A DNA stretch of 64,000 bases from Phaeosaccion multiseriatum (taxonomy: Eukaryota; Protista; Ochrophyta, other classes), in contig OZ218952.1 of NCBI GenBank assembly GCA_965112735.1, positions 4,030,001 through 4,094,000 of the forward strand. Direction: 5' to 3'. Under the pieces are notes generated by a model. The model saw only the letters and a list, made by a program, of their open reading frames with translations. It was not told the DNA's origin and searched no databases. Positions 34,876-64,000 of the stretch are shown piece by piece (within the stretch, counting starts at the first letter, position 1; every line of letters starts with the position of its first letter). A program made the translations under genes and the position numbers.

Positions 34876-35349
34876 GTGAGGCAGTCTATCGCCCATGGTG
34901 AGGGAGGCGATGTGAGTCAGAGTTGTGGGATGTCGTGCCGCTCGCTTTCTTAGGACTCGCACTGCGTAGCGCCCCCCTGAAGTAGACCACACAGCTGGAC
35001 CAGAGTGACTGCGGTATCACCAACTGCTGCTGTACCACCAACTACCACTTCGGCCTCGAGCCTCGGCCTCCGCTTCTAGCTGTCTAGCTGGAGAGTCATG
35101 ACCTTTGTACAGTAGGCCACACAGGCGATCTCTAAGTACGCCGCCCTATACTGTTTGCCATGTAGTGGCATCTATCTGGCTTGCTTCACAGCCTCATTGC
35201 CCGTAGTAGAAGATTCGGGGAGGTGAAGGAAGTGTTTTTTATAGGCAAAGAAGGTACAAGGTTGTCTTTTTATGCAGTAACTTAAAAAAGTAGCTCAGAG
35301 GTAGCTCAGAGCGCCCGGCTTATCCTGGGTCAAGGCCTCTTCCGCCGTT

Positions 35350-45984: not shown

Positions 45985-47704
45985 TTATTTGAGCAGCGAG
46001 TCCAGCGCGTCTCCTCCGAAGTCGCTCTCGGCGTGCAGCAAATCGAGATTGCTCTTCTCAGGCATATCGGCCAGCGCCTCCTCCAGCACACGCACGCACG
46101 CACCAAAGTCCGGCCTGTCGTTTGGCGCCTGTGCCCAGCAGTCCTGGATGAGGTCCCTCACCGCCCGCGGCGTGTCCCCCCGGGGTACGCTTGGCCGGTC
46201 TCCGCCCACAATGACGTCACGAATGTCCGTCACCTCGTAGTCGTAAAAGGGAATCTCGCCGGAGAACATTTCCCACAGAAGCATGCCGAAGGCGTACACG
46301 TCCACGGCTTTGTTGAACGGCTTTTGAAGGCGGCGGCAGACAAGAGGAGGATATGAGGAAGAAAAGCAAAAGAGGGTGAGAGAGGCGACGGTAGAGCGGG
46401 CCATTTGTAAGTGTTGTCTTTGGAGCGGGAGCTTTTGGAAGGAGAGGCAGCAGAAACGGGGGGGCGGGGACACCATACGTAGTGTCCCCCATCCCACGCA
46501 GCAGGATCCCCAGCCTAGTCCTGTTCTCTTTCTCTTTCCCCCCCTCACCTTATTCTGTAAAAGCTCCGGAGCCATGTAGGCAGGTGTGCCCGCCATCGTT
46601 GCCTTGGTCCTCACCAAGCCAAAGTCGCACAGCTTAATGACCCCGTCTCGATCCATGAGCAAGTTCTGCGACTTTAGGTCCCTGTGAATGATGGGTGGGG
46701 TCCTGTGATGCAGGTAGTCCATGGCCCGCCCCACGTCCAGCGCAATGCCCACTAGCTCACGCGCCCCCACGTCCCGCCTCTCCTTGTGTAGCACCTCAAA
46801 GAGAGAGGCGTCGCAGCGCTCCATTACGAAAAAGAGGTTGGGAGGCTCCATACTTGCCCCCACAAAGCGGACAATGTTGGGGTGATCCAGAGAGGCCATG
46901 ATGAGTAACTCGTCCAGGTACTCCCGCTTCAAGGGCTCACTGACACGAGGGTCGAACTACGGCAAAGGGAAAGAGAGGGTGTGTGTGTGGGGGGGGGGGG
47001 TGTTAGGTGTTGGGTTCTTTACATGGGCAGGGGAGAAGCAGCAGAGGGAGTGGAGGTGTACAGGGCAAGAGATGGGAGGCTTGGGTGTGAGGCGCGTCTT
47101 TGATCGAGGGGAGAGCGGGGGAGCCAGGGCTACATCCAGATGAGTAGAGGGGGAGTACATGGGTGGCCGAGTGGTTGAGAGGAGAAGCCTCTCGGAGCTG
47201 CAGTCTTCCAAGCGCAAAGGAGGAGCAGTCGATGTTCCATGAATTCCACACACACTTGAGGAGGCAGATATGGAACTGTAGCAGCGACCGCGACAGGGAG
47301 CAATTCAGTCGCGATCAGTAGTAGCGAGCTCCACACACTGAGCTGTTAGCAGTCACCCCTAGTGCCACATAGTAGATCTCTCCCCCCAGTAGGCTCAGGA
47401 AGAGACCATCGCTCGAGGCGTCACTCACCAGCGTTTTTAATGCCACCTCCTCGTCCTGATAATATCCGCTATAAATCACGCCCACGCCTCCTCCTCCTAT
47501 TCGTTTTCCCATCTCGATATCCTTGAAGTCTATCGTCTTCCATAGCTGCTGCTCCGTCGGACGCTCCTCGTGTCCACCTGTTTGTTCCACTCTTGTGCGT
47601 TCACCCTTCTCTTCTCCACTTTGTCGCTTGCATTCCATGCCTTCGTCGCCGCCTTCAAAGTCGTCCTCATAGTCGTCCTCCTCCTCCCGATCGTCTGTAG
47701 GCAT
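45985..47704 (-). CDS. TKL (Raf/MLK-like) protein kinase
   Basis: IGGGGVGVIY, VALK, LDHPNIV, HRDLKSQNLL, DFG, GTPAYMAPE, DVYAFG and CW...P..RPDF; two introns. Confidence 0.93.
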
Positions 47705-51385: not shown

Positions 51386-51655
51386 CCTCCTTTCTTGTTC
51401 CGCCTTGTGTTGAGAAATCTAACTCGGCCCTCTAAAAGTTAGGACGAAGCAGGCCTGGAGCAAGCGCTGCATGGACTATGACACACACACGAGCGAAAGG
51501 GGCCTCACTTTCAACAGCGGTGCCGTGGATTAATTGATCGGGGGGGTGCGGGTTGGATTCCGGGTTGTCGTCAAGTCGGATGGCACTCGAAGGCTCGGTT
51601 TCCCCCCCCCCCCTTGTGTGTCACTCCTCTGCGAATCGCGAGGGCGATCATCATC

Positions 51656-54369
51656 ATGCTGATGATGCGAGTGATGTCGTTGAGGAGGGTGGTCAGGACC
51701 TGCATTGGCAGGAGGTCAAGACCGTTAGGAAGCACCTCTGCGCAACGTAGGGCAGAGACTGCGCTTTCCCTTCCACAATGCCCACAATGGTCCTGCTACT
51801 CGAATGGGGGACGGCGGGGGGGTGACAAGGCGAGGCAGAAGCAGCTCATGAGGGAGATCCAAGCTCTGGGTGCAAGCAAGGACTGGAAGAGGGTCGCGCC
51901 TACTCTGGAACGCGCACGGCGAGTGGGTCTGCAACCCAATCGGTACTATTTGAGTGCTGCCATTTCCGCGATTGGGAAGTGCGGGCGGTGGAAGGGCGCT
52001 TTGAAACTTCTGGAAGAGATGAAGAAGGAGGGTATTGAACCAGATGAGTACAGCTATAACTCAGTCATTACCGCTTGTGCCAATGGCAAGAACCACGTGG
52101 AGGCCTTGCGACTGCTCAGGAATATGAAGGCGGTAGGACTCAAGCCAGATGTTATCAGCTTCAATACCACCATTACTGCGTGTTCCAACGACAATAACGA
52201 AGTTGAGGCCCTGAAGCTCTTCAATGAGATGAAGGAGGTAGGAATCGCTCCCAACAAGAGGACCTATAACACTATCATTACGGCGTGTGGCAGAGCTGGC
52301 GAAAGTACACAGGCCCTGAAGCTCTTCAAGGAGATGAAGGCGGTAGGACTCAATCCTGATGTGATCAGCTTTAGTGCAGCCATCACTGCATGTGGCAACG
52401 ACAACAACCATGTGGAGGCCCTGAAGCTCTTCAAGGAGATGAAAGCGGTAGGACTCAGGCCTAATGTGATCAGCTACAATGCAGCCATTACTGCATGCTG
52501 TGCAAAGTCAGTCGTATGTCAGTGGCCCAGGCCTAGGCAACGCAGTGAGAAACGGTGCCCGTTTCTCACTAACCTCCCAGCAGGTTGGTCGTTTAGGATG
52601 GCTCACGGATAAAGCTAATAGAGACAAGGCTGGCTGCCAGGCTGGCTTTGGGGTTGTAAAGAGTCACGTTGCTCTCCACCTAGGATAGGAGTAGCCGCAT
52701 GGACAAGGTAACAGCAACCCCAAAGCCAGCCTGGCAGCAGCCTTGTATCTATTAGCTTTATCCGTGAGCCATCCTAAACGACCAACCTGCTGGGAGGTGA
52801 GTGAGAAACGGGCCACGCACCGTTTCTCACCGTATTTGCCTGGGCCTGGGCCATTGACAAAATACTGACTTTCAACAATGCGGCAACGGCAGCAACCACG
52901 TGGAGGCTCTGAAGCTCTTCAAGGAGATGAGGGGTGTAGGACTCAAGCCCGATGTGATCAGCTTCAATGCAGCAATCACTGCATGCGGCAACGACAACAA
53001 CCACGTGGAGGCCCTGAAGCTGCTCAAGGAGATGAAGGCGGTAGGACTCAAGCCTGATGTGATCAGCTTCAATGCAGCAATCACTGCATGCGGCAACGAC
53101 AACAAACACGTGGAGGCCCTGAAGCTGCTCAAGGAGATGAAGGCGGTAGGACTCAAGCCTGATGTGATCAGCTACAGCACAGCCATCACTGCATGTGGCA
53201 ACGACAACAACCATGTGGAGGCCCTGAAGCTCTTCAAGGAAATGAGGGGGGCAGGACTCAAGCCAACTGTGATCAGCTACAGCGCAGCCATCACTGCATG
53301 TGGCAACGGCAACAACCACGTGGAGGCCCTGAAGCTCTTCAAGGAGATGAAGGCGGTAGGACTGAAGCCTGATGTGATCAGCTACAGTGCAGCCATCACT
53401 GCATGTGGCAACGACAACAACCATGTGGAGGCGTTGAAGCTCCTCAGAGAGATGAAGGCGGTAGGACTCAAGCCTGATGTGATCAGCTTTAATGCTGCAA
53501 TCACTGCATGTGGCAACGACAACAACCATGTGGAGGCCCTGAAGCTCTTCAAGGAGATGAATGAGGTAGGAATCAAGCCGGATGTGATCAGCTACAGTGC
53601 AGCCATTACGGCATGTGGCAACGAAGATAACCACGTGGAGGCCCTGAAGCTGCTCAAGGAGATGAGGGGGGTTGGACTCAAACCAAATGTGGTCAGCTTC
53701 AATGCAGCCATCACTGCATGCGGCAACGACAATAACCACGTGGAGGCCCTGAAGCTGCTCAAGGAGATGAGGGGGGTTGGACTCAAACCAAATGTGGTCA
53801 GCTTCAATGCAGCCATCACTGCATGCGGCAACGACAACAACCACGTGGAGGCCCTGAAGCTGTTGAATGAGATGAAGGCGGTAGGGCTCAATCCTGATGT
53901 GATCAGCTACAGTGCAGCCATCACTGCGTGTGGCAACACGAATAACCACGTGGAGGCCCTGATGCTGTTGAATGAGATGAAAGCGGTAGGACTCAAGCCA
54001 GGTGTTATCAGCTACAGCTCAACCATTAATGCTCTGCAGGAGGGTGGCGACGAGGAGGCTGCTGACGAAGTGTACGCAGAGGCCGTGTCGCAAGGGGTCT
54101 TCAGACACTGGAACAAACCGGGGCAGGAGATGGACTTGCACGACTTCACAAGGGGAACGAGCAAGGCAGCGCTTCGTCACGTGCTCTCAGAGGCGAAGTC
54201 GGGGGCTGAGATCAAAGTCATCACAGGCCGAGGCCGAGGCAGCGAGGGCGGTGTCAGCATTCTCAAGCCCACTATGCTGGCCTATTTACAGGAGAGAGCA
54301 GGAGTCGAAGTGTGGGAAGATGAGCGCAATCCCGGGAGGGTGGTGATGCGGCTCGGTGGAGGGAAGTAA
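51656..54369 (+). CDS. PPR-SMR protein (~17 P-type PPR motifs + C-terminal SMR nuclease-like domain), probably organelle-targeted; interrupted by a MITE at 52499-52877
   Basis: Arg/Ser-rich presequence; 35-aa repeats VISYSAAITACGNDNNHVEALKLFKEMKAVGLKPD; SMR motifs MDLHDF, VITGRGRGS and NPGRV. ORFs 51614-52612 and 52900-54369 join in frame when the insertion is removed. Confidence 0.92.
52499..52877. mobile_element. 379-bp foldback MITE with TGT..ACA ends and a 4-bp TSD (Ginger-like); candidate spliced intron 52507-52892
   Basis: ~160-bp imperfect inverted arms (52499-52656 / 52715-52877) with a ~58-bp spacer; TSD atgc at 52495-52498 and 52878-52881. Confidence 0.92.
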
Positions 54370-54713: not shown

Positions 54714-55068
54714 TTGTGGAGGGCGTGCCAGGCTCCCCTGATGCTCATCTCTCTGGGCTCGACAGCTTTAATGATCCATTCGCCCCGCCTTGGGGGGGCG
54801 AATTGTACCTGTAGAATGAAGTCAAGAGAAAAAAGGAAAAGAAAAAAATAAAGAAATGAGATGACAATTATTACTATTAGGCAGTTTGGTGCGGGGGCGG
54901 CGGCTCAGAAGGCGAGCGTTTACACAGAGCAGGCAACAGGCAGAGCACACGCGCTCAGCGGCTCTCAGCGTTTTGCTTGGGAGAAGAAGGAGAAGCAGTA
55001 GAAGCGGCAGAAAGTAGCAGAGAAGTAGGAGATTAGCATGTGTGAGTGAAGAAAGGCCTAGGCACAAA

Positions 55069-58000
55069 ATGGCCACCACCAGCACAGCCACGACCAGCAG
55101 CAGCCACTGCTGGGACCACATCCACTTCGATGGCTACGACGTGCTTGCTCTGGCGGCCTACCCTCCTACGGTGGTGCTGCTCGATGCTGCTGCGCTGGTG
55201 GTCATGCAGCGTATCGCCATGCCGAAGGGGTTGGGCGTACCCAGTCACCTAGTGTGGCAACCCACGTGCCCTACCACAGGGACTGGCTCGGGGAGGCTCG
55301 CCGTACTCGTGCCAGAAGAAGAAGAAGAAGAAGAAGGAGGAGGAGGAGGAGGAGGACGAGCGGCTGCTCAGTTTCCCACACTACTCATTCTGGCGCCCAG
55401 GACCTTGCTTCTGTCGAGCAGGGTACGGTACAGTTGGACTTGGTTGGCAAGGGTATCGCTCTCCGCGGTGGGAGCTGGGCGAGTCAGCAGAGGACTCTTG
55501 ATGGACTGGTCTTCGGAGGGCCCTTTGGTGGTGGCTGGAGGTGGAGGGAGTATCAGTGTGTGGTCCGTGGATGCGGTCAGGCACCGCCTCGACGGCTCTC
55601 AGAGTTTGCAAGCGGCGGATGAGCCCCACCCCTATGATGGGTTTAGCACGCTGCAGGAGAAGACGTCCGGGAGACTGCCTCGCCGCCTTGACTCTAGACT
55701 CGCTGACGAGGGCAATGCTAGTGGGGGGGGCAAGGATGGGCAGCATCACCAGCAGGAGGAGCAAGAGGAGGGGGCAGAGGTACTTCTGCCTGAAGGCACG
55801 AAGGACTACGACAGGGAGGGAGAGGCAGGGGACACGGCCGGGCCAGTCCTGGGGCACGAGAGAGGGAACGGGTACTCTCTTCAGGCGCTGCGAGAGGACG
55901 CGAAAGACGTGGTGGTGTGCGAGTGGACTGTGCACCCCCGGGAAGGATGCAGCAATTGCATCTCGCTCGCCGCCTCACCCTGTGGCTGCATGTTTGCTGT
56001 TGCCCAGGCCGGCTCAGGCACGGTGGTGGTCTGGAAGAGGAGGATGGAGACTGGAAAAGGAATAGAAGGAGCCTCGACAAGGGAGACATGGAATTTTTAC
56101 GAGTCGGCAGTACTGAAGACCTCTAAAGACGCGGGAATGGTGCGCATCCGCTGGGAGAAGGGTGTCGCAGCCGCACAGGACTACCTCCTCATGCTGGATG
56201 CGAGTGGCAAGGCCAAGCTCTGGATCGAGCGGCCACCGCCCCAATTCGAGGATCAGGCAACCGAAGCAGCGGCAGTGATAGAAGCAGTGGTAGAGGCTTT
56301 CCCTCTCACAATAGAAGGAGGTGGAGGAGGAGGAGGAGGAGGAGGGGGAGGAGGGGGGGGAGAAGGAGGAGGGGGTGATGGTGAAGGGGTAGGAGGGGGA
56401 GGACAGCAGGACCCACCACATAGCCCAGTGCGGGCTCCTACCCAAGTTGGTAAGTCGGCATGTCTGTCGCCAGTGCCAGCGCTGAGGGCGGCCTTTGTGG
56501 AAGCGTCCATGCTCCGCGCTTGGCTGGGATCGCAGTCAGATCTGCTGACCTTCAACTTTGTCCAGTGGGCCTACTTTGGCACCAGAGCTAGAGAGCTGTG
56601 CGTGGGGGGGCAGTCCAACACGCCTTACTATACGGTGAGAGGGACACCCCAAGAGAAAAGAGATAGAGAGAGAGTGAGAGGCAGAGAGGGGAGAGATGAC
56701 AAGGGGGAAAGGTGGAGGGGGCGGGAGGAAGGAAGCAGACGTGTTGATGTGCGGGTCTGGTCTTCGCCTGTGGCAACACTTAACTTGGTCGTCCTTCCTC
56801 CCCAAGGCCTTTCTCTCATTTCTCCTGCCCTGTGTGTTGCTCTCTCCCTCTCCCCCTCTCCCCCCCTCTCTCACTCACTCGTGCAGGTACATCAGCGTGA
56901 GGGCAGGGAGACGAGGGCGAGCAAGAGCTGGATCATGGGCGTGACTCGGTCAGGCTTGCTCAAGTTGTGGAGGGTGGTGGACATTTCGCTTCCCAGTGGC
57001 TGGAGTAAGCCGGAGCCCATGGAGGTTGCAGCTCTCAAGCTCTCAGACTTGGTGGCGGTAAGATTCACTTGCAATCTCGGTCTGTTTGACCCAAAGATAC
57101 CGTAAGATGATGGGGTGGAGGGCGTCGGTCTCCGACGGTGTACGGAGGAGACGTTTGACACAGATATGGCATATCTGCTCTACTCTAAGCGTCAAGTCGT
57201 ATCGACGTTTTATCTGACTGACGTACTGACTGACGTACTGACTTACTGCACCTGCTGCCACCCCAGGACGCGCCTCGTTTTTGGTCGAGGAGCCGTGGCG
57301 AGGGAGGGAACATTGGGCACACCTCCATCAGCACCATTGGCTTCTTCCACTCCGCAGACACCGACGGAGCCCCTAGAGAGCTCCAGGTGGTGGCCTTCAC
57401 AGCGGAAGGAGGGGACGCAGGAGGAGGGGTAGCAGGGGGGGGGGCAAGAATCCGCAGAGGCACAGCAGGGGCGGAGTCGTCGTCTGCGTCTGGGGGGGGG
57501 TATGCTTGCTGGTCGGCTCCGTCTCTGACGGTGATTAGTGCACGCCTCAACCATGACGAGGAGATGAACAAGTACGTGTTTACCAACGTCCGAGCGGCCA
57601 CTCTTCCCCTCCAGCAGTGGCATCCTAACAGCAGGAGCCCCAGCCTGAAGGGACTCGGCAACGGGTCCTCCCCTGCCGCGCTTTGCGTGGGGATGGGGGT
57701 GAGTATGGGGGTGGCCTGCTACAAGGGCGACCGCAGAGGAGGCAGTCGCAACGGCAGCAGTAGCAGCAGCAGTAGTAGTGGGGGTATTAGCACCAGTAGT
57801 GGCAGCAGCCAGGCGAGGACTTGTGCGTCCTCGTGTTCTCCGGCGGTGCACCCCACACTGCCCATGGCGGCGACAATCGAGGCGGGGAGAAGGAAGAGGC
57901 GAAGAGGCGAGGCAGCCCCGGGCGCTGCTACAAGGGTAGCTGTGTTCAGTTGGTTGAACGGAGGCAGTCACCTGCAGTCCATTCCGTTCCGCCCCACCGT

Positions 58001-61000
58001 GTCTCCTGATGGCTGTGGCCAGCTCTTCAGTGCACGGCACAAGAAGATCAAGAGCGGGTCTGAGAATGCCTTTGTTCCGTACATGCTGCCGGTGAGTGAG
58101 TGAGTGAGTGAATTGAGTTGGTGAATTGAGTGGGTGAATTGTGTGAGTGAGTGAGTGAGTGAGTGAGTGAGAGAATGAGTGAGTGGGTGAATTGAGTGAG
58201 TGATTGAGTGAGTTGTGTAAAGGCGCTATACCCTCAGTGCACTGGTGAACACGCCCTGTACCGTGCACGTCTGAGCACCTCCCTTCCCCCTCCCCCGTTC
58301 CGGAACGTGCCCTTGTCGCCTTCTGCCCCTACGCCTGCTGTCCCTGCTCCCCCTTCGCCGCAGTCGGTGGATCTCCCCGAGGGGCTGGAGGCGCGACGCG
58401 TGTTTTGGCTCACGGATTGGGTGGGGGTGGAGGACCTGGGGCCAGCGATGCTCGTCCTGTGCGCCAGACAAGACGCGCCGTCATGCAGCGGCTCCTCTGA
58501 GGTGGACATTGCTTCGGCGGGGATGACTGCAGACGAAGGCGGGGGCAGCAGCGGCAGCAGCGGCGGCAGCAGCGGTGGTCATGGGTTAGACGACCACTCC
58601 AGGTGGCGGCGGGGCCAGCAGCAGCAACAGCAGCGCAAGCAGGTGCTGCTGCTGTATGAGCTGAGGGAGCGACAGGTCGGGACGGGTGCGACAGAGCGGC
58701 GGTTGGAGGAGGCACGGTATCTGGAGGGAGTTGCGTCTGATGGAGCCTCCAACGATTGGAGCAGTAGAGCCACCAGCTCGGGCTCATTGGGCAGCTCCGT
58801 CCAGGGTATGGGTAACAGCACTAGCACTGGTAATAGTAGCAGTGGCAGCAACGGCAATGTCAACAACTACGAACACGTCATCGCACCGATAATCGCAGAG
58901 GAAGGATTCCCGGACGCGGAAGCTGTGGTGGTGCGGCAGGCGAGTGGAGGGAAGACTAGAGGTCGGGCAGGGGCAGCAGGGCGTGGTGGTGGCGCTAGTG
59001 GCGGTGGTGGTGGAGGAGGAGAAGGAGGAGGAGCCGCTCGGTCTTCTACAGGAGTGGTCTCTCCTCCCTCACGTAGGGATGGGTTGCGTGAGAAGGGCCC
59101 ATGGGAGACCAATCGTGTCATCAGGCTGCGTGTCGAGCATGGCTTAGGCCTCGGCCTGACTCTGGAGTTTGAGCACGGTAAGGTGGTGGTGGCCGGCTTT
59201 AAGCGCCACCCCACCGCGGGAGGGATGTTACCTGCGGAGGCTTGTGGCCAGCTCCACAAGGGTGACGTCATCACCTCGCTGAATGACGTGAGTCTGCAGG
59301 ACCTCTCTGGCGATGACGCCAAGGATGTCATCCGAACGGCGAGGTTCGGTCGTGGATTGGGAATGGACATGGACCACGTCACCATCACTGTCCGGAGCAC
59401 CGTGAACATGGGGGCAGAAAAAGACGACGACGACGGAGGAGGAGGAGGAGGAGGAGGAGGAGGGGAGTACCGCTGCACCAGCGGCGGCGGCGACGGCATG
59501 ATGCGTGGGAATGGGCCCTGGTTTCGATCCACGAGTCCGGGCAAGGGTCGCACCAGTCGAGCAACGAGTGGAAGTGGCAGGGACGGTGGAGAGGGTGGTG
59601 CGCCACCCTTGCCGCGGAGCGGTTGGTTCACCAACGCTCGAGCCCGGGTCAGCACGAGAAGGTTTCGACGGAGGAAAGGAAAGCGGACGGGGGAGGGAGG
59701 GGGAGGAGGAGCGGAGGGGAGTGGAAGGGGTGTTGCTGGTGTGGGGGACGCTGGAGGGGGTGCTACAGAGGGAGGCCGAGGGCAAGGGGGAATGTACGTG
59801 GAGGATCAGTCCGTGGCGGCGAATGATTCCAACTGCACAGAGGTGTATTGGCATCTGTGCAACGTGGAGACTTCTTCCAGAGGAGGAGGAGTAGTAGAAG
59901 GAGGAGGAGGAGGAGGAGGAGGAGGAGGAGGAGGAGGAGGAGGGGTGGGAGGAGGGGGGCCAAGCATAGTGGTCGAAGGAAGCGAAGAAGGTGGCCGAGA
60001 TGATACGCCAACTCTTCCAGATGGCACAGGTGCCCTCCTGCCTCCTCCTCCTCAGCCGCCGATTACGAGAAGAGGGGGCAGGACGACGATGGCGGCCGCT
60101 CTGTCCTCTGACCTCCTCGTGGGCAGCGAAAGCATCTTCTTGCCTCGCCTGCCACCGACCGGAGGAGCCGTGCCAAAGGTTGAACCTACTGACGAACCTG
60201 AGCTGTGGGAGGAGGATGGAGAGTACCACCCTTTGGATGACAGGGTAGGGCGTCAGGGCATCCTCCTGGGCTGTGCAGCCGTCGTCGGAGTAGGAGGAGG
60301 AGGAGAAAGAGGAGATGGCGTTTCGGAAAAGAAGACGTCTGAGTGTTTTGCAATGGTGGCCATGAGTGTGTGCAAGACGGTGCCACGTAGGAAGACGGAG
60401 GCGGAGGCATTGGTAGGGACAGGTGCAGGGTCAGGGGCAGGGACAGGCGAATACACTAGGCAAGATGAGGAGGGGGAGGGGGAGGAGGATGAGAAGGAGG
60501 CGGCGGAGGCGGCAGAGGAGGAGCAGGAAGGGCGGGTGAAGGTGAAGGAGCTGTGTCGAGTGGAGATTGAGTCGGAGGCGCGGCCTGTGCTCCTCAACGA
60601 GCAGCAGCAGGGAGGAGCGCAGCAGAGTCGACGGACCGGAGCGATGATCGCTCTCTGTGCGGACGGGTGGGTGCGACGCTGGGTGCTGCTGGCTCCACGG
60701 ACGACGGGGAAGGGTGGGACACATGACGGTGAGTGAGGGGGGAGAAAAAGAGGGGTTACGTGCTCGAAGGCTTGGCAAGTGCACTCTCTCTCTCTCTCTC
60801 ATACGTACACACGCACACGAACGGAGAGAAAGAGAAGAAGTTGCGGAGTCTGGTTCCAGAGCTTTGCTTGGTCCGCTCCACGTTGGCGCATCACAGCACC
60901 ACATCGGATCTGTTTCCCCTTCTCACCCCTCACTCACTCTCACTCCACTCCGACCCAGAGGGGCCCTCGCCATCCACTCCACCCTCTCACACTCTGCTCT

Positions 61001-61024
61001 GTGACGACGTATGCTCTGCTCTCT

Positions 61025-61076
<52 letters not shown>

Positions 61077-63833
61077 ATGTATCTTACAATCTGCAGGTGC
61101 TGCCGCTGGAGAAGGCTGGCAAATCAAAACCGAGGTCCTGTGTAGGCCCTTTGTGCATTCCCTTGGTGGTGGTGCGGTGAGCATGCTCTCAGCGGCGGAG
61201 GGCTGCCCCGCCCCTGCTTTCCTCGCTGCTGTGGACGACGCGGGGGTGATTGAGGTGTGGCGCCGCTCCAAGTCCTACCCTCAGGGAGAGTATCAGAAGG
61301 AAGGGCGACTCATCGCACCCGAGGCTGAGAAGCAGCAGCACCAAGACGACGAGAGCTTCCGCAGCGGGGTGGACGAGAAGAAGCAGCATATCAACAACAG
61401 CGGCAGCAGCAGCGGCAGTAACAGCAGCACGACCAAGGCGTTCTTCTCCACGAGCGCCGTGGCCTGCATCTGTTGGGTGTACCCGGAGCCTTCTGTCGGA
61501 CACGCAGACAAGTCCTCCTCGGGGGTGCGCACCCACTGCCTCTGCGTGGCGAGGGGCGGTAGTGTCATTGTCTACGAGCGGCACCTACTGCACCAGCCAA
61601 GGGAGGCGACGGGGGGGAGCAACAGCGACGACCGGGGCAGCAAATCGAGCATCAGTAGTAGTAGCAGCGGCAGTGGTAGTGACAGCAGCAGCAGCAACGT
61701 CGGTGAGGAGTGGGGGTGGATGCCGTTGCTTCGAGTGGCGGACCCGACCCTGCTCCTGCCTATTCCGGGGACAGGGCTGTCTGCCTTCTGCCAGGGGTTG
61801 GTGGCCAAGTACAGCCGTGCCCGACGGGTGCGTGTGTGTGTGTGTGTGTGTGTGATTGCGTTTGTACTTGCCCTGCTGTTGTCCTGTCAAGTCATCCTGT
61901 TTCTTACCTATCCTGTAGCAAGTATCCCCCTTCCCTCTCTCTTTGTCCTGCCCTACCAAATCTCCCTCAAGGAGCTGCTACTGCTCTTGATCGGCCTCTC
62001 CACCAGTTCCCCCTTCCCTTCCCTGTCTTTAACCTATGCTCTGTTTCGACCTGCGAAATTGAATCATCTGGGCCCGCCGGACCGACCACAGACGCAGCGG
62101 CGATCCAAAGAGAGCGATGCTTTGGACGAGTGGGACCCCTTGAATGTTGCGGCGCTGTGGTGTGCGGTAGGGAGTAGAGGCAGTGGCATGGGAGGCAGCG
62201 ACGGGTGGGGGGCAGGCCGCCAGAGGGCGCTGACGTTGCTGAGGTGGGCTGCGAGAGGGTCGGCAGCAGCAGCAGGAGTTGGTGATACAGCAGCAGGAAC
62301 AGGAGGAGGAGAGGAAGGGACTTCACTATCTTCTACATTAATGGCCGCAGCCGTATGCCCCGTGCTGCAGCAAGTGGGGGATGCGGCTCACGCTCCAGAG
62401 ACTGGAGGAAAAGGGGAGGAGGAGGAGGAGGAAGAACAGGAAGCTCTCTTTGCTCTGTCAGACGCCTTACTTTACGAGTACTTTGACGAGAAACGGTTAC
62501 AAGCCGTGGCTAGGATGCGGAGCAAGGCAGCAAGCTCTCGTCGGAGCGGCGGCGGTAGCAGCAGCATTGACACCACACCAAGCCTAAGCACAAGAGAGGA
62601 CAAGGAGGGGCAAGTGGGGGAGGAAGAGAGAGACGCCGAGAGGGCCATGACGTCCGCCGTGGAGCGAGAGAAGAGGCGTGTGGCGAGGTTTCAGCGGCTG
62701 AGCCCGGCCCGGAGGCTGGCACTTTGGGCGCTGTGTAGCTCGTCCCTGCACGGGGAAGTGTCGTCCGAGGAGGGGCTCCAAGCCGTGAGAGACGTGCGGC
62801 AGCGGGAGGAGGATTTTATTTACGCCCTGCACAGCCTGGAAGTGCAGGAGCACAGCAGACATGGAGGTGGTAGCGGCAAGTACAGCGGGGAGTCGGACTC
62901 GTCGTCGTCGTCGTCAGCAGTGGGGATCAGCAGCAGCTATCACTCTTCCACGCGGGCGCAGCAGGAGCGGCACTGGGATAGAGTGAGTGGGGGCAGCGCT
63001 CACTCGGCAGCGCTCCTCTCCTTTTCTCAGCACTCCTCGAGTAGGCCCGGCCAAACAGGGGGGGGCAGGAGCGGGGGCGGTGGGGCCAAGCGTGAAGCGC
63101 CGTCTTTGGGGAAGGCGTTTGATGGCGTACCGTCGGGAGGGGCTTTCTTGCTGAGCAAGGGGCTGTACGATCGGCTACAAGCGGTGGCAGGAGGCAAACT
63201 AGGCGGGGCAGGCGGCGAGGCAGCAGCAGCCGCGACAGCAGGGGCCTTGATGAGCGCCTCTCCACAGCAGCATCACCATAAGAGTAGTGGTGGCCCTTCG
63301 TCCTCCTCCTCCTCGTCCTCCTCCTCCTCCTCCTCCCCGATTGGAGGAATGAGGGTAGCGTCCTCCACAACTCTGGCGCTGCTTTTGGCGGGGAAAAGGG
63401 TACAAGCACAAGTCATTAAGGAGGCCTTTGGAGTCAGCGTCGCCCCCTCGGGAACGCCGTCCTGGGCGATGGGAGGCGGAGGCGGCGGCGGGGGTGGCGG
63501 GGGAGGAGCGGGAAGAGCGGGGGTGGTCGACTGGGACGCTGTGAGAGCCTCCAACCTCCCTCTTTGGTGTGAGGACCTGGACCTGCTTCGAGAAGTGGCG
63601 CAGACGGTGGCGTCTTGCACCTACCGCCGCGATCACGAAGTGATGGAGGTGGCGCTTTTCTATATCGCACAGGGCAAGGAGACGCAGCTGAGGCAAGTGG
63701 CGAAGCTGGACGATCATCGCCCGTCGCACTCCAGGAGGAAGGGGGCGTCGGCAGGGAGTCGCCTCATGAAGCTTATGGAGCACGACTTTACTCGTCCGGA
63801 GGGCCGGTAAGTGAGGTTGTTGTTGTTGTTGTT

Positions 63834-63868
<35 letters not shown>

Positions 63869-64000
63869 CGTGCTGCTTTTAGACCTTTCAGACCTTCGAA
63901 ATTGCGCATGTATGTCTCTCCCTCCTTTTGTCTCCCGTCGCCCTTACCGCCTCTCTCACCTCCCCTATCCCGTGCCGCTCGTGCCTGTCTCTCCCGCCCT
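55069..64000 (+). CDS. DMXL/Rabconnectin-3alpha/Rav1-like WD40 scaffold with an inserted PDZ domain (3' end beyond window)
   Basis: Degenerate WD-like strands (SISVWS, TVVVWK, LLKLWR, VIEVWR). PDZ-like GLGLTLEFEHGKVVVAGF..PAEACGQLHKGDVITSLND. Rav1p_C-like WDAVRASNLPLW..LLREVAQTVA..VALFYIAQGK..HDFTRPEGR followed by donor gtaagt at ~63807. Confidence 0.75.

Follow-up and report, generated by a model that had tools for sequence, protein, structure and literature searches.

A probable recent foldback MITE insertion in a PPR gene of Phaeosaccion multiseriatum, with candidate splice signals at its ends

The interrupted PPR gene and its element

The stretch of DNA analyzed here (64,000 nt; hereinafter designated the window) contains a PPR gene, of the kind whose products bind RNA in organelles, that is interrupted by a foldback MITE (Table 1). 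Apart from the insertion, the gene has no introns and reads as two open frames, 51614-52498 and 52882-54369, with six PPR motifs up to the insertion, which interrupts motif 6, and 11 after it (Pfam PPR families, E 1e-61 and 1e-102). The best database matches of the encoded protein are at most 51% identical. The first-pass annotation had called the host a PPR-SMR gene; the 11 downstream motifs do lie in an open frame, whereas the Smr match at the C-terminus is weak, scoring 23.7 bits against a Pfam cut-off of 25.7.

Two further genes of the window lie on either side of this locus. Protein search with the kinase on the minus strand gave matches of 58-67% identity in Tribonema, Chrysoparadoxa, Discosporangium, Ectocarpus and Ascophyllum, which indicate an ochrophyte close to the brown and yellow-green algae; its best relatives fall in Xanthophyceae, Chrysoparadoxophyceae and brown algae. 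A very large gene (55018-64000, plus strand) combines long open exons with many poly-G/poly-E low-complexity runs and, close to its end, matches Rav1p_C (RAVE/DMXL-like) weakly; protein search returned no relatives for it. Two exact copies of GTTGGTGATAC are present at 35014-35024 (minus) and 62278-62288 (plus), both embedded in CAG/CTG-type repeats (e.g. CAGCAGCAGGAGTTGGTGATACAGCAGCAGG).

Table 1 Positions of the genes, the element and the splice-like words in the window
Feature	Positions	Strand	Remarks
TKL/CTR1-like protein kinase gene	45988-47542	-	two GT-AG introns (47428-46957, 46548-46321), homology-anchored
Host PPR gene	51614-54369	+	17 PPR motifs, weak SMR-like C-terminus
Left TSD copy ATGC	52495-52498	.	
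Foldback MITE	52499-52877	.	379 bp, TGT..ACA ends
Foldback left arm	52499-52656	.	inverted-repeat pairs, self-alignment
Terminal donor-like word aaa/GTCAGT	52507-52512	+	7/9 to MAG/GTRAGT
Second GTCAGT	52518-52523	+	11 bp past the first; out of frame with AG 52892
Internal 3' splice-site-like block	52565-52583	+	CTCACTAAC; pyrimidine run, CCCAG/CAG; 11/14 pyrimidines; left arm
First in-frame stop TAA on read-through	52610-52612	+	
Foldback right arm	52715-52877	.	inverted-repeat pairs, self-alignment
Strongest internal donor-like site gag/GTGAGT	52797-52802	+	8/9; right arm
Branch-point-like TACTGAC	52863-52869	+	reverse complement of the terminal GTCAGT word
Right TSD copy ATGC	52878-52881	.	
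First AG past the branch-like word	52891-52892	+	host codon AGC, 11 nt beyond the TSD

The element begins with TGTGC and ends with AACA, its termini being TGTKSAAAGTCAGT. The left junction reads ...actgcATGC/TGTGCAAAGTCAGT and the right junction ACTGACTTTCAACA/ATGCggcaac..., and the ATGC target site of this single insertion sits within GCATGCGG. A repeat search pairs the two arms in blocks of 42 nt (83% complementary), 76 nt (97%) and 24 nt (100%) that cover nearly the entire element, and self-BLAST aligns the element with its own reverse complement at 83% over 369 nt. As RNA it is predicted to form a single extended hairpin at -308 kcal/mol, compared with -138 ± 6 for shuffled sequences (z = -28). 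Such an element is far beyond chance. Each arm additionally contains a small hairpin of its own (52544-52570 and 52800-52830; AGTGAGAAACGG / CCGTTTCTCACT), making the element a palindrome of palindromes in which GTGAG/CTCAC words are abundant.

The ORF list contains no frame of at least 80 aa that lies wholly inside the element, and Rfam gives no match in the window. The features of a non-autonomous TIR transposon are thus all present: terminal inverted repeats, a TSD, small size, lack of coding capacity and multiple copies, although the window itself contains a single one. Deletion of the element together with one ATGC yields ..ITACGNGSNHVEAL.. / ..VISYNAAITACGNGSNHVEALKLFKEM.., which is colinear with the sister repeats and restores a 35-residue repeat exactly, indicating that both the insertion and its target site duplication are real. 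The description of the element in the first-pass annotation (TGT..ACA ends, inverted arms and an ATGC TSD within PPR motif 6) therefore holds in every sequence-level detail. Unspliced read-through into the element halts translation at 52610, 5.3 PPR motifs into the protein.

Family copy number and an uninterrupted copy of the site

Depth was obtained from the four sequencing runs in which the locus was found, all of one sample (X1-X4) and none of them RNA. The even depth across the intergenic flank, the unique parts of the gene and the next gene identifies these as genomic DNA, and single-copy depth is about 500, 54, 100 and 70 across the four runs. In X1, depth inside the element, counted on contigs at least 95% alike only, is about 150,000, compared with about 500 in the flanks. 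The element family thus stands at about 300 times single-copy depth, perhaps half of that once both arms are allowed for, and only one position in the element carries more than 5% variant depth. Such high depth with so few variants indicates a young and abundant MITE family, numbering roughly 100-300 copies that are nearly identical. Among the DNA contigs covering 52717-52846 there are also variant members with 33-117 nt of the right arm swapped for short unrelated stretches, which represent MITE subfamilies with internal rearrangements. Two metagenome scans, one with a 24-mer core and one with a degenerate terminal pattern, returned no further copies of the family.

The same DNA contains the site without the element. 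A contig joint running from 52494 to 52878 skips 383 nt, with four letters common to both sides, and is found at a depth of 133 in X3 and 130 in X4, where single-copy sequence stands at about 100 and 70, respectively. Cross-mapping from a sister repeat was considered as the source of this joint and rejected, the best match within the gene having 6 mismatches in 58. An uninterrupted copy of the site exists in the DNA of this sample, as an allele or as a very recent duplicate. Its existence means that an intact frame downstream of the element is what a recent insertion would be expected to show, and is no evidence of splicing; this applies to the stop-free downstream repeats that the first-pass annotation pointed out.

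The depth of the empty joint comes closer to a full copy than to half of one and is higher than a simple heterozygote predicts. Depth at or above single-copy level would follow more readily if the insertion were fixed, the empty-site contigs stemmed from a near-identical paralogous PPR gene and the gene in the window were a young pseudogene. PPR repeat k-mers are 8-48-fold over-represented, indicating a large PPR family, which also speaks for a paralogue. Against it, the unique stretches of the gene (51449-51669, 52893-52980 and 54218-54317) lie at single-copy depth, which disfavours an identical duplicate with those flanks. The joint contig begins 26-27 nt before 52494, or ~30 nt ahead of the element when the four shared letters are counted, and this start would fit a k=31 graph in which filled and empty forms diverge from a common left flank. 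We therefore give the paralogue only a slim chance.

A mis-assembled repeat might also have put the element into the gene. Among the contigs listed, which are only a small subset of the total, none crosses either element-flank junction, whereas the empty junction is seen. The perfect 4-bp duplication and the exact colinearity of the restored repeat nevertheless speak for real transposition and not for a mis-join, and we consider an assembly artefact very improbable.

Splice-like signals measured against local introns

The terminal words of the element can be read as splicing signals. The left end carries GTCAGT twice and the right arm its reverse complement within TACTGAC, and the first AG that follows belongs to the host, the element having no AG of its own to offer. 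The splice arithmetic of the first-pass annotation is correct: once 52507-52892 (386 nt) is taken out, the frame stays open and reads ..ITACCANNHVEAL.., one residue (3 nt) shorter. When all plausible removals are translated, 52507 is the only donor in frame with the AG at 52892, and the later AGs at 52905 and 52914 are out of frame. Chance alone would put one of two terminal donors in frame with a probability of about 0.56 (5/9), so the in-frame outcome by itself weighs little.

The palindromic GTCAGT/ACTGAC arrangement had been interpreted as a design that makes the element spliceable in either orientation. The words are indeed present in both orientations, but this is automatic in any inverted repeat that contains GTNAGT, which reads ACTNAC on the opposite strand and so matches the branch consensus. 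The two GTCAGT words at each end, 11 bp apart, may equally well be subterminal transposase-binding repeats.

As a reference for these signals we used the kinase introns, anchored by homology to stramenopile kinases, together with tight ORF junctions in the window; a blind ORF-junction intron finder was discarded as too noisy in this GC-rich DNA. The kinase introns (minus strand) read ctg/GTGAGT...CTAAC...ccgtag/TTC and aag/GTGAGG...ttcaaaag/CCG. Tight ORF junctions in the large neighbouring gene provide the donors gcg/GTAAGA (57058-57266), ccg/GTGAGT (58092-58237) and acg/GTGAGT (60729), and a gene at 13.5 kb provides cag/GTGAGT (13586). GTRAG is found in all six mapped donors. Five of these introns could be traced from donor to acceptor, and their last 30 nt contain 20-23 pyrimidines in three cases, and 14 and 6 in the others. 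The likely intron at 57058-57266 (plus) contains TACTGAC three times in tandem (CTGACTGACGTACTGACTGACGTACTGACTTACTG) directly before a ccccag acceptor, and the one at 58092-58237 (plus) is for the most part a (GTGAGT)n-like microsatellite in which donor-like words follow one another.

Measured against this set, the candidate branch word is excellent, being identical to the triplicate word at 57220-57250 in the nearby intron. The candidate donor differs from the local donors by C at +3 and also has A at -1. The candidate acceptor lies in a purine-rich coding context, with five pyrimidines in the upstream 14 nt and 13 in the last 30 nt. The strongest splice-like sites of the element are internal: a textbook-like 3' block, CTCACTAACCTCCCAG/CAG, in the left arm and an 8/9 donor in the right arm, an order that is wrong for removal of the whole element. 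Two-intron models through these internal sites were examined as well, and were rejected as a source of functional protein since they retain a pseudo-exon of 213-216 nt with several stops. In the predicted hairpin, moreover, the donor word (52507-52512) is base-paired with the branch word (52864-52869).

These comparisons bear directly on whether the element is a true introner, adapted to spliceosomal removal whichever way round it is inserted, this copy being a newly gained intron that costs one residue. In that case GTCAGT would provide the donor, TACTGAC in the opposite arm the branch point and the first AG of the host the acceptor, and the hairpin would draw the ends together. Several observations are in keeping with this: the motifs of the two arms match in position, the spliced product would keep the frame, the branch word matches that of a nearby intron, the family is young and of high copy number, and either-orientation, hairpin and codon-changing introners all have precedents. 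The departure of the donor from the GTRAG of all six local donors weighs on the other side, as does the lack of a polypyrimidine tract. The acceptor hinges on a chance AGC codon, so that only one third of insertions would be in frame; the stronger sites are internal and misordered; and the donor would be sequestered by the branch word. The coexistence of an uninterrupted copy, in addition, removes any selective argument for splicing. On balance we consider a true introner unlikely.

Relation to introners and Ginger elements, and the favoured reading

Introners of Aureococcus anophagefferens and Micromonas pusilla were reportedly described by Huff et al. 2016. Like these, and like the class 6/8/10 elements of Polarella glacialis, the element is short, non-autonomous, bounded by TIRs and TSDs, exonic and of high copy number, and its candidate splice signals likewise belong partly to the element and partly to the host. 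In Aureococcus, Micromonas and Polarella, by contrast, splicing has been shown, the splice sites lie at the TSD or terminus and the mRNA is as a rule restored precisely, whereas the putative intron described here would use a donor 8 nt inside the element and an AG 11 nt outside it, in host coding sequence. Introners that act in either orientation are known in Aureococcus and Polarella (preprint 10.1101/2020.10.14.339549).

In the hairpin introner elements of Amoebophrya, inverted repeats at the two ends of the intron are predicted to fold into a hairpin that brings the exons together, and short direct repeats flank the element (PMC7789003). Those inverted repeats measure 8-20 nt and many of the introns are non-canonical, whereas here the whole 379 bp forms the hairpin and the proposed sites are GT..AG. 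A few-residue change to the protein also has a precedent in the family 4 introner of Aureococcus sp., which lengthens the mRNA by 12 nt (PMC9860276); that introner carries both splice sites, unlike the present element with no AG of its own. Introners arise from at least half of transposon superfamilies; a case in Amoebophrya that is reminiscent of Ginger lacks Ginger termini and TSDs (PMC12130899). As orientation-independent and hairpin introners are already known, neither property would be new even if the element were spliced.

Ginger1 and Ginger2 elements have TGTNR termini, 4-bp TSDs and a Gypsy-like integrase, and target CCGG/CCGT (Ginger1) or RTATAY (Ginger2) (PMC2836005). The TGT..ACA-type termini, long TIRs and 4-bp TSD of our element resemble theirs, while its ATGC target in GCATGCGG corresponds to none of these target sequences. 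The right end, TGTTG, fits TGTNR; the left end, TGTGC, departs from it, position 5 not being a purine. No integrase-like transposase gene was found among the long ORFs scanned in the window (20 of 36 of at least 220 aa). The proposal that the element is Ginger-like is thus supported in part: the terminal TGT..ACA and the duplication length agree, the TGTNR terminus agrees on one side, and the target preference differs, with no transposase in the scanned ORFs.

An ordinary exonic MITE insertion is the default reading of the locus: such insertions share with this one a small TIR element with a TSD, polymorphism and a premature stop if the element is retained, and no difference from them is established. 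We favour, at a probability of roughly 65%, a recent and not yet fixed insertion of a non-autonomous foldback MITE into PPR motif 6, for which splicing is latent and hypothetical. This reading is supported by the TIRs, the perfect TSD and the exact restoration of the repeat, by the high copy number and youth of the family, and by the exact empty site in DNA. The subordinate place given to splicing follows from signals that are weak relative to the mapped introns, from stronger internal sites that lead to stops, and from the pairing of donor and branch word in the -308 kcal/mol hairpin. The element was probably mobilised by a DDE enzyme, integrase-like or Ginger-like, that makes TG..CA ends and 4-bp duplications. 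If read through, the element would end translation at 52610, and the inserted copy is therefore most likely a truncated, null or weak allele, while the terminal GTCAGT/ACTGAC words could hypothetically lend it a latent capacity for in-frame 52507-52892 splicing with the loss of one residue.

Several observations count against the insertion-allele reading: there is one in-frame splice choice, TACTGAC is identical to the word in the nearby intron, documented introners alter the mRNA by a few codons, the high empty-site depth is unexplained, and the contigs listed cross no element-flank junction. A more far-reaching proposal is that an integrase-type foldback MITE of a brown-alga-related ochrophyte works as an orientation-independent introner, this copy being a polymorphic, just-gained intron; we rate it as quite unlikely. 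The mechanism that it entails, in which one palindromic terminal word supplies both donor and branch point, the hairpin joins the ends and host coding sequence contributes the AG, appears to us equally doubtful.

As it stands, a young high-copy MITE family with an insertional allele in a PPR gene is ordinary transposon biology. If the junction 52506^52893 were present in RNA, the locus would show the gain of an intron at a stage when it is still polymorphic, both filled and empty forms occurring in a single sample. Such a case would be rare and useful for gauging how efficiently a brand-new introner is spliced, and would add an integrase-type foldback element to the kinds of transposon that make introns.
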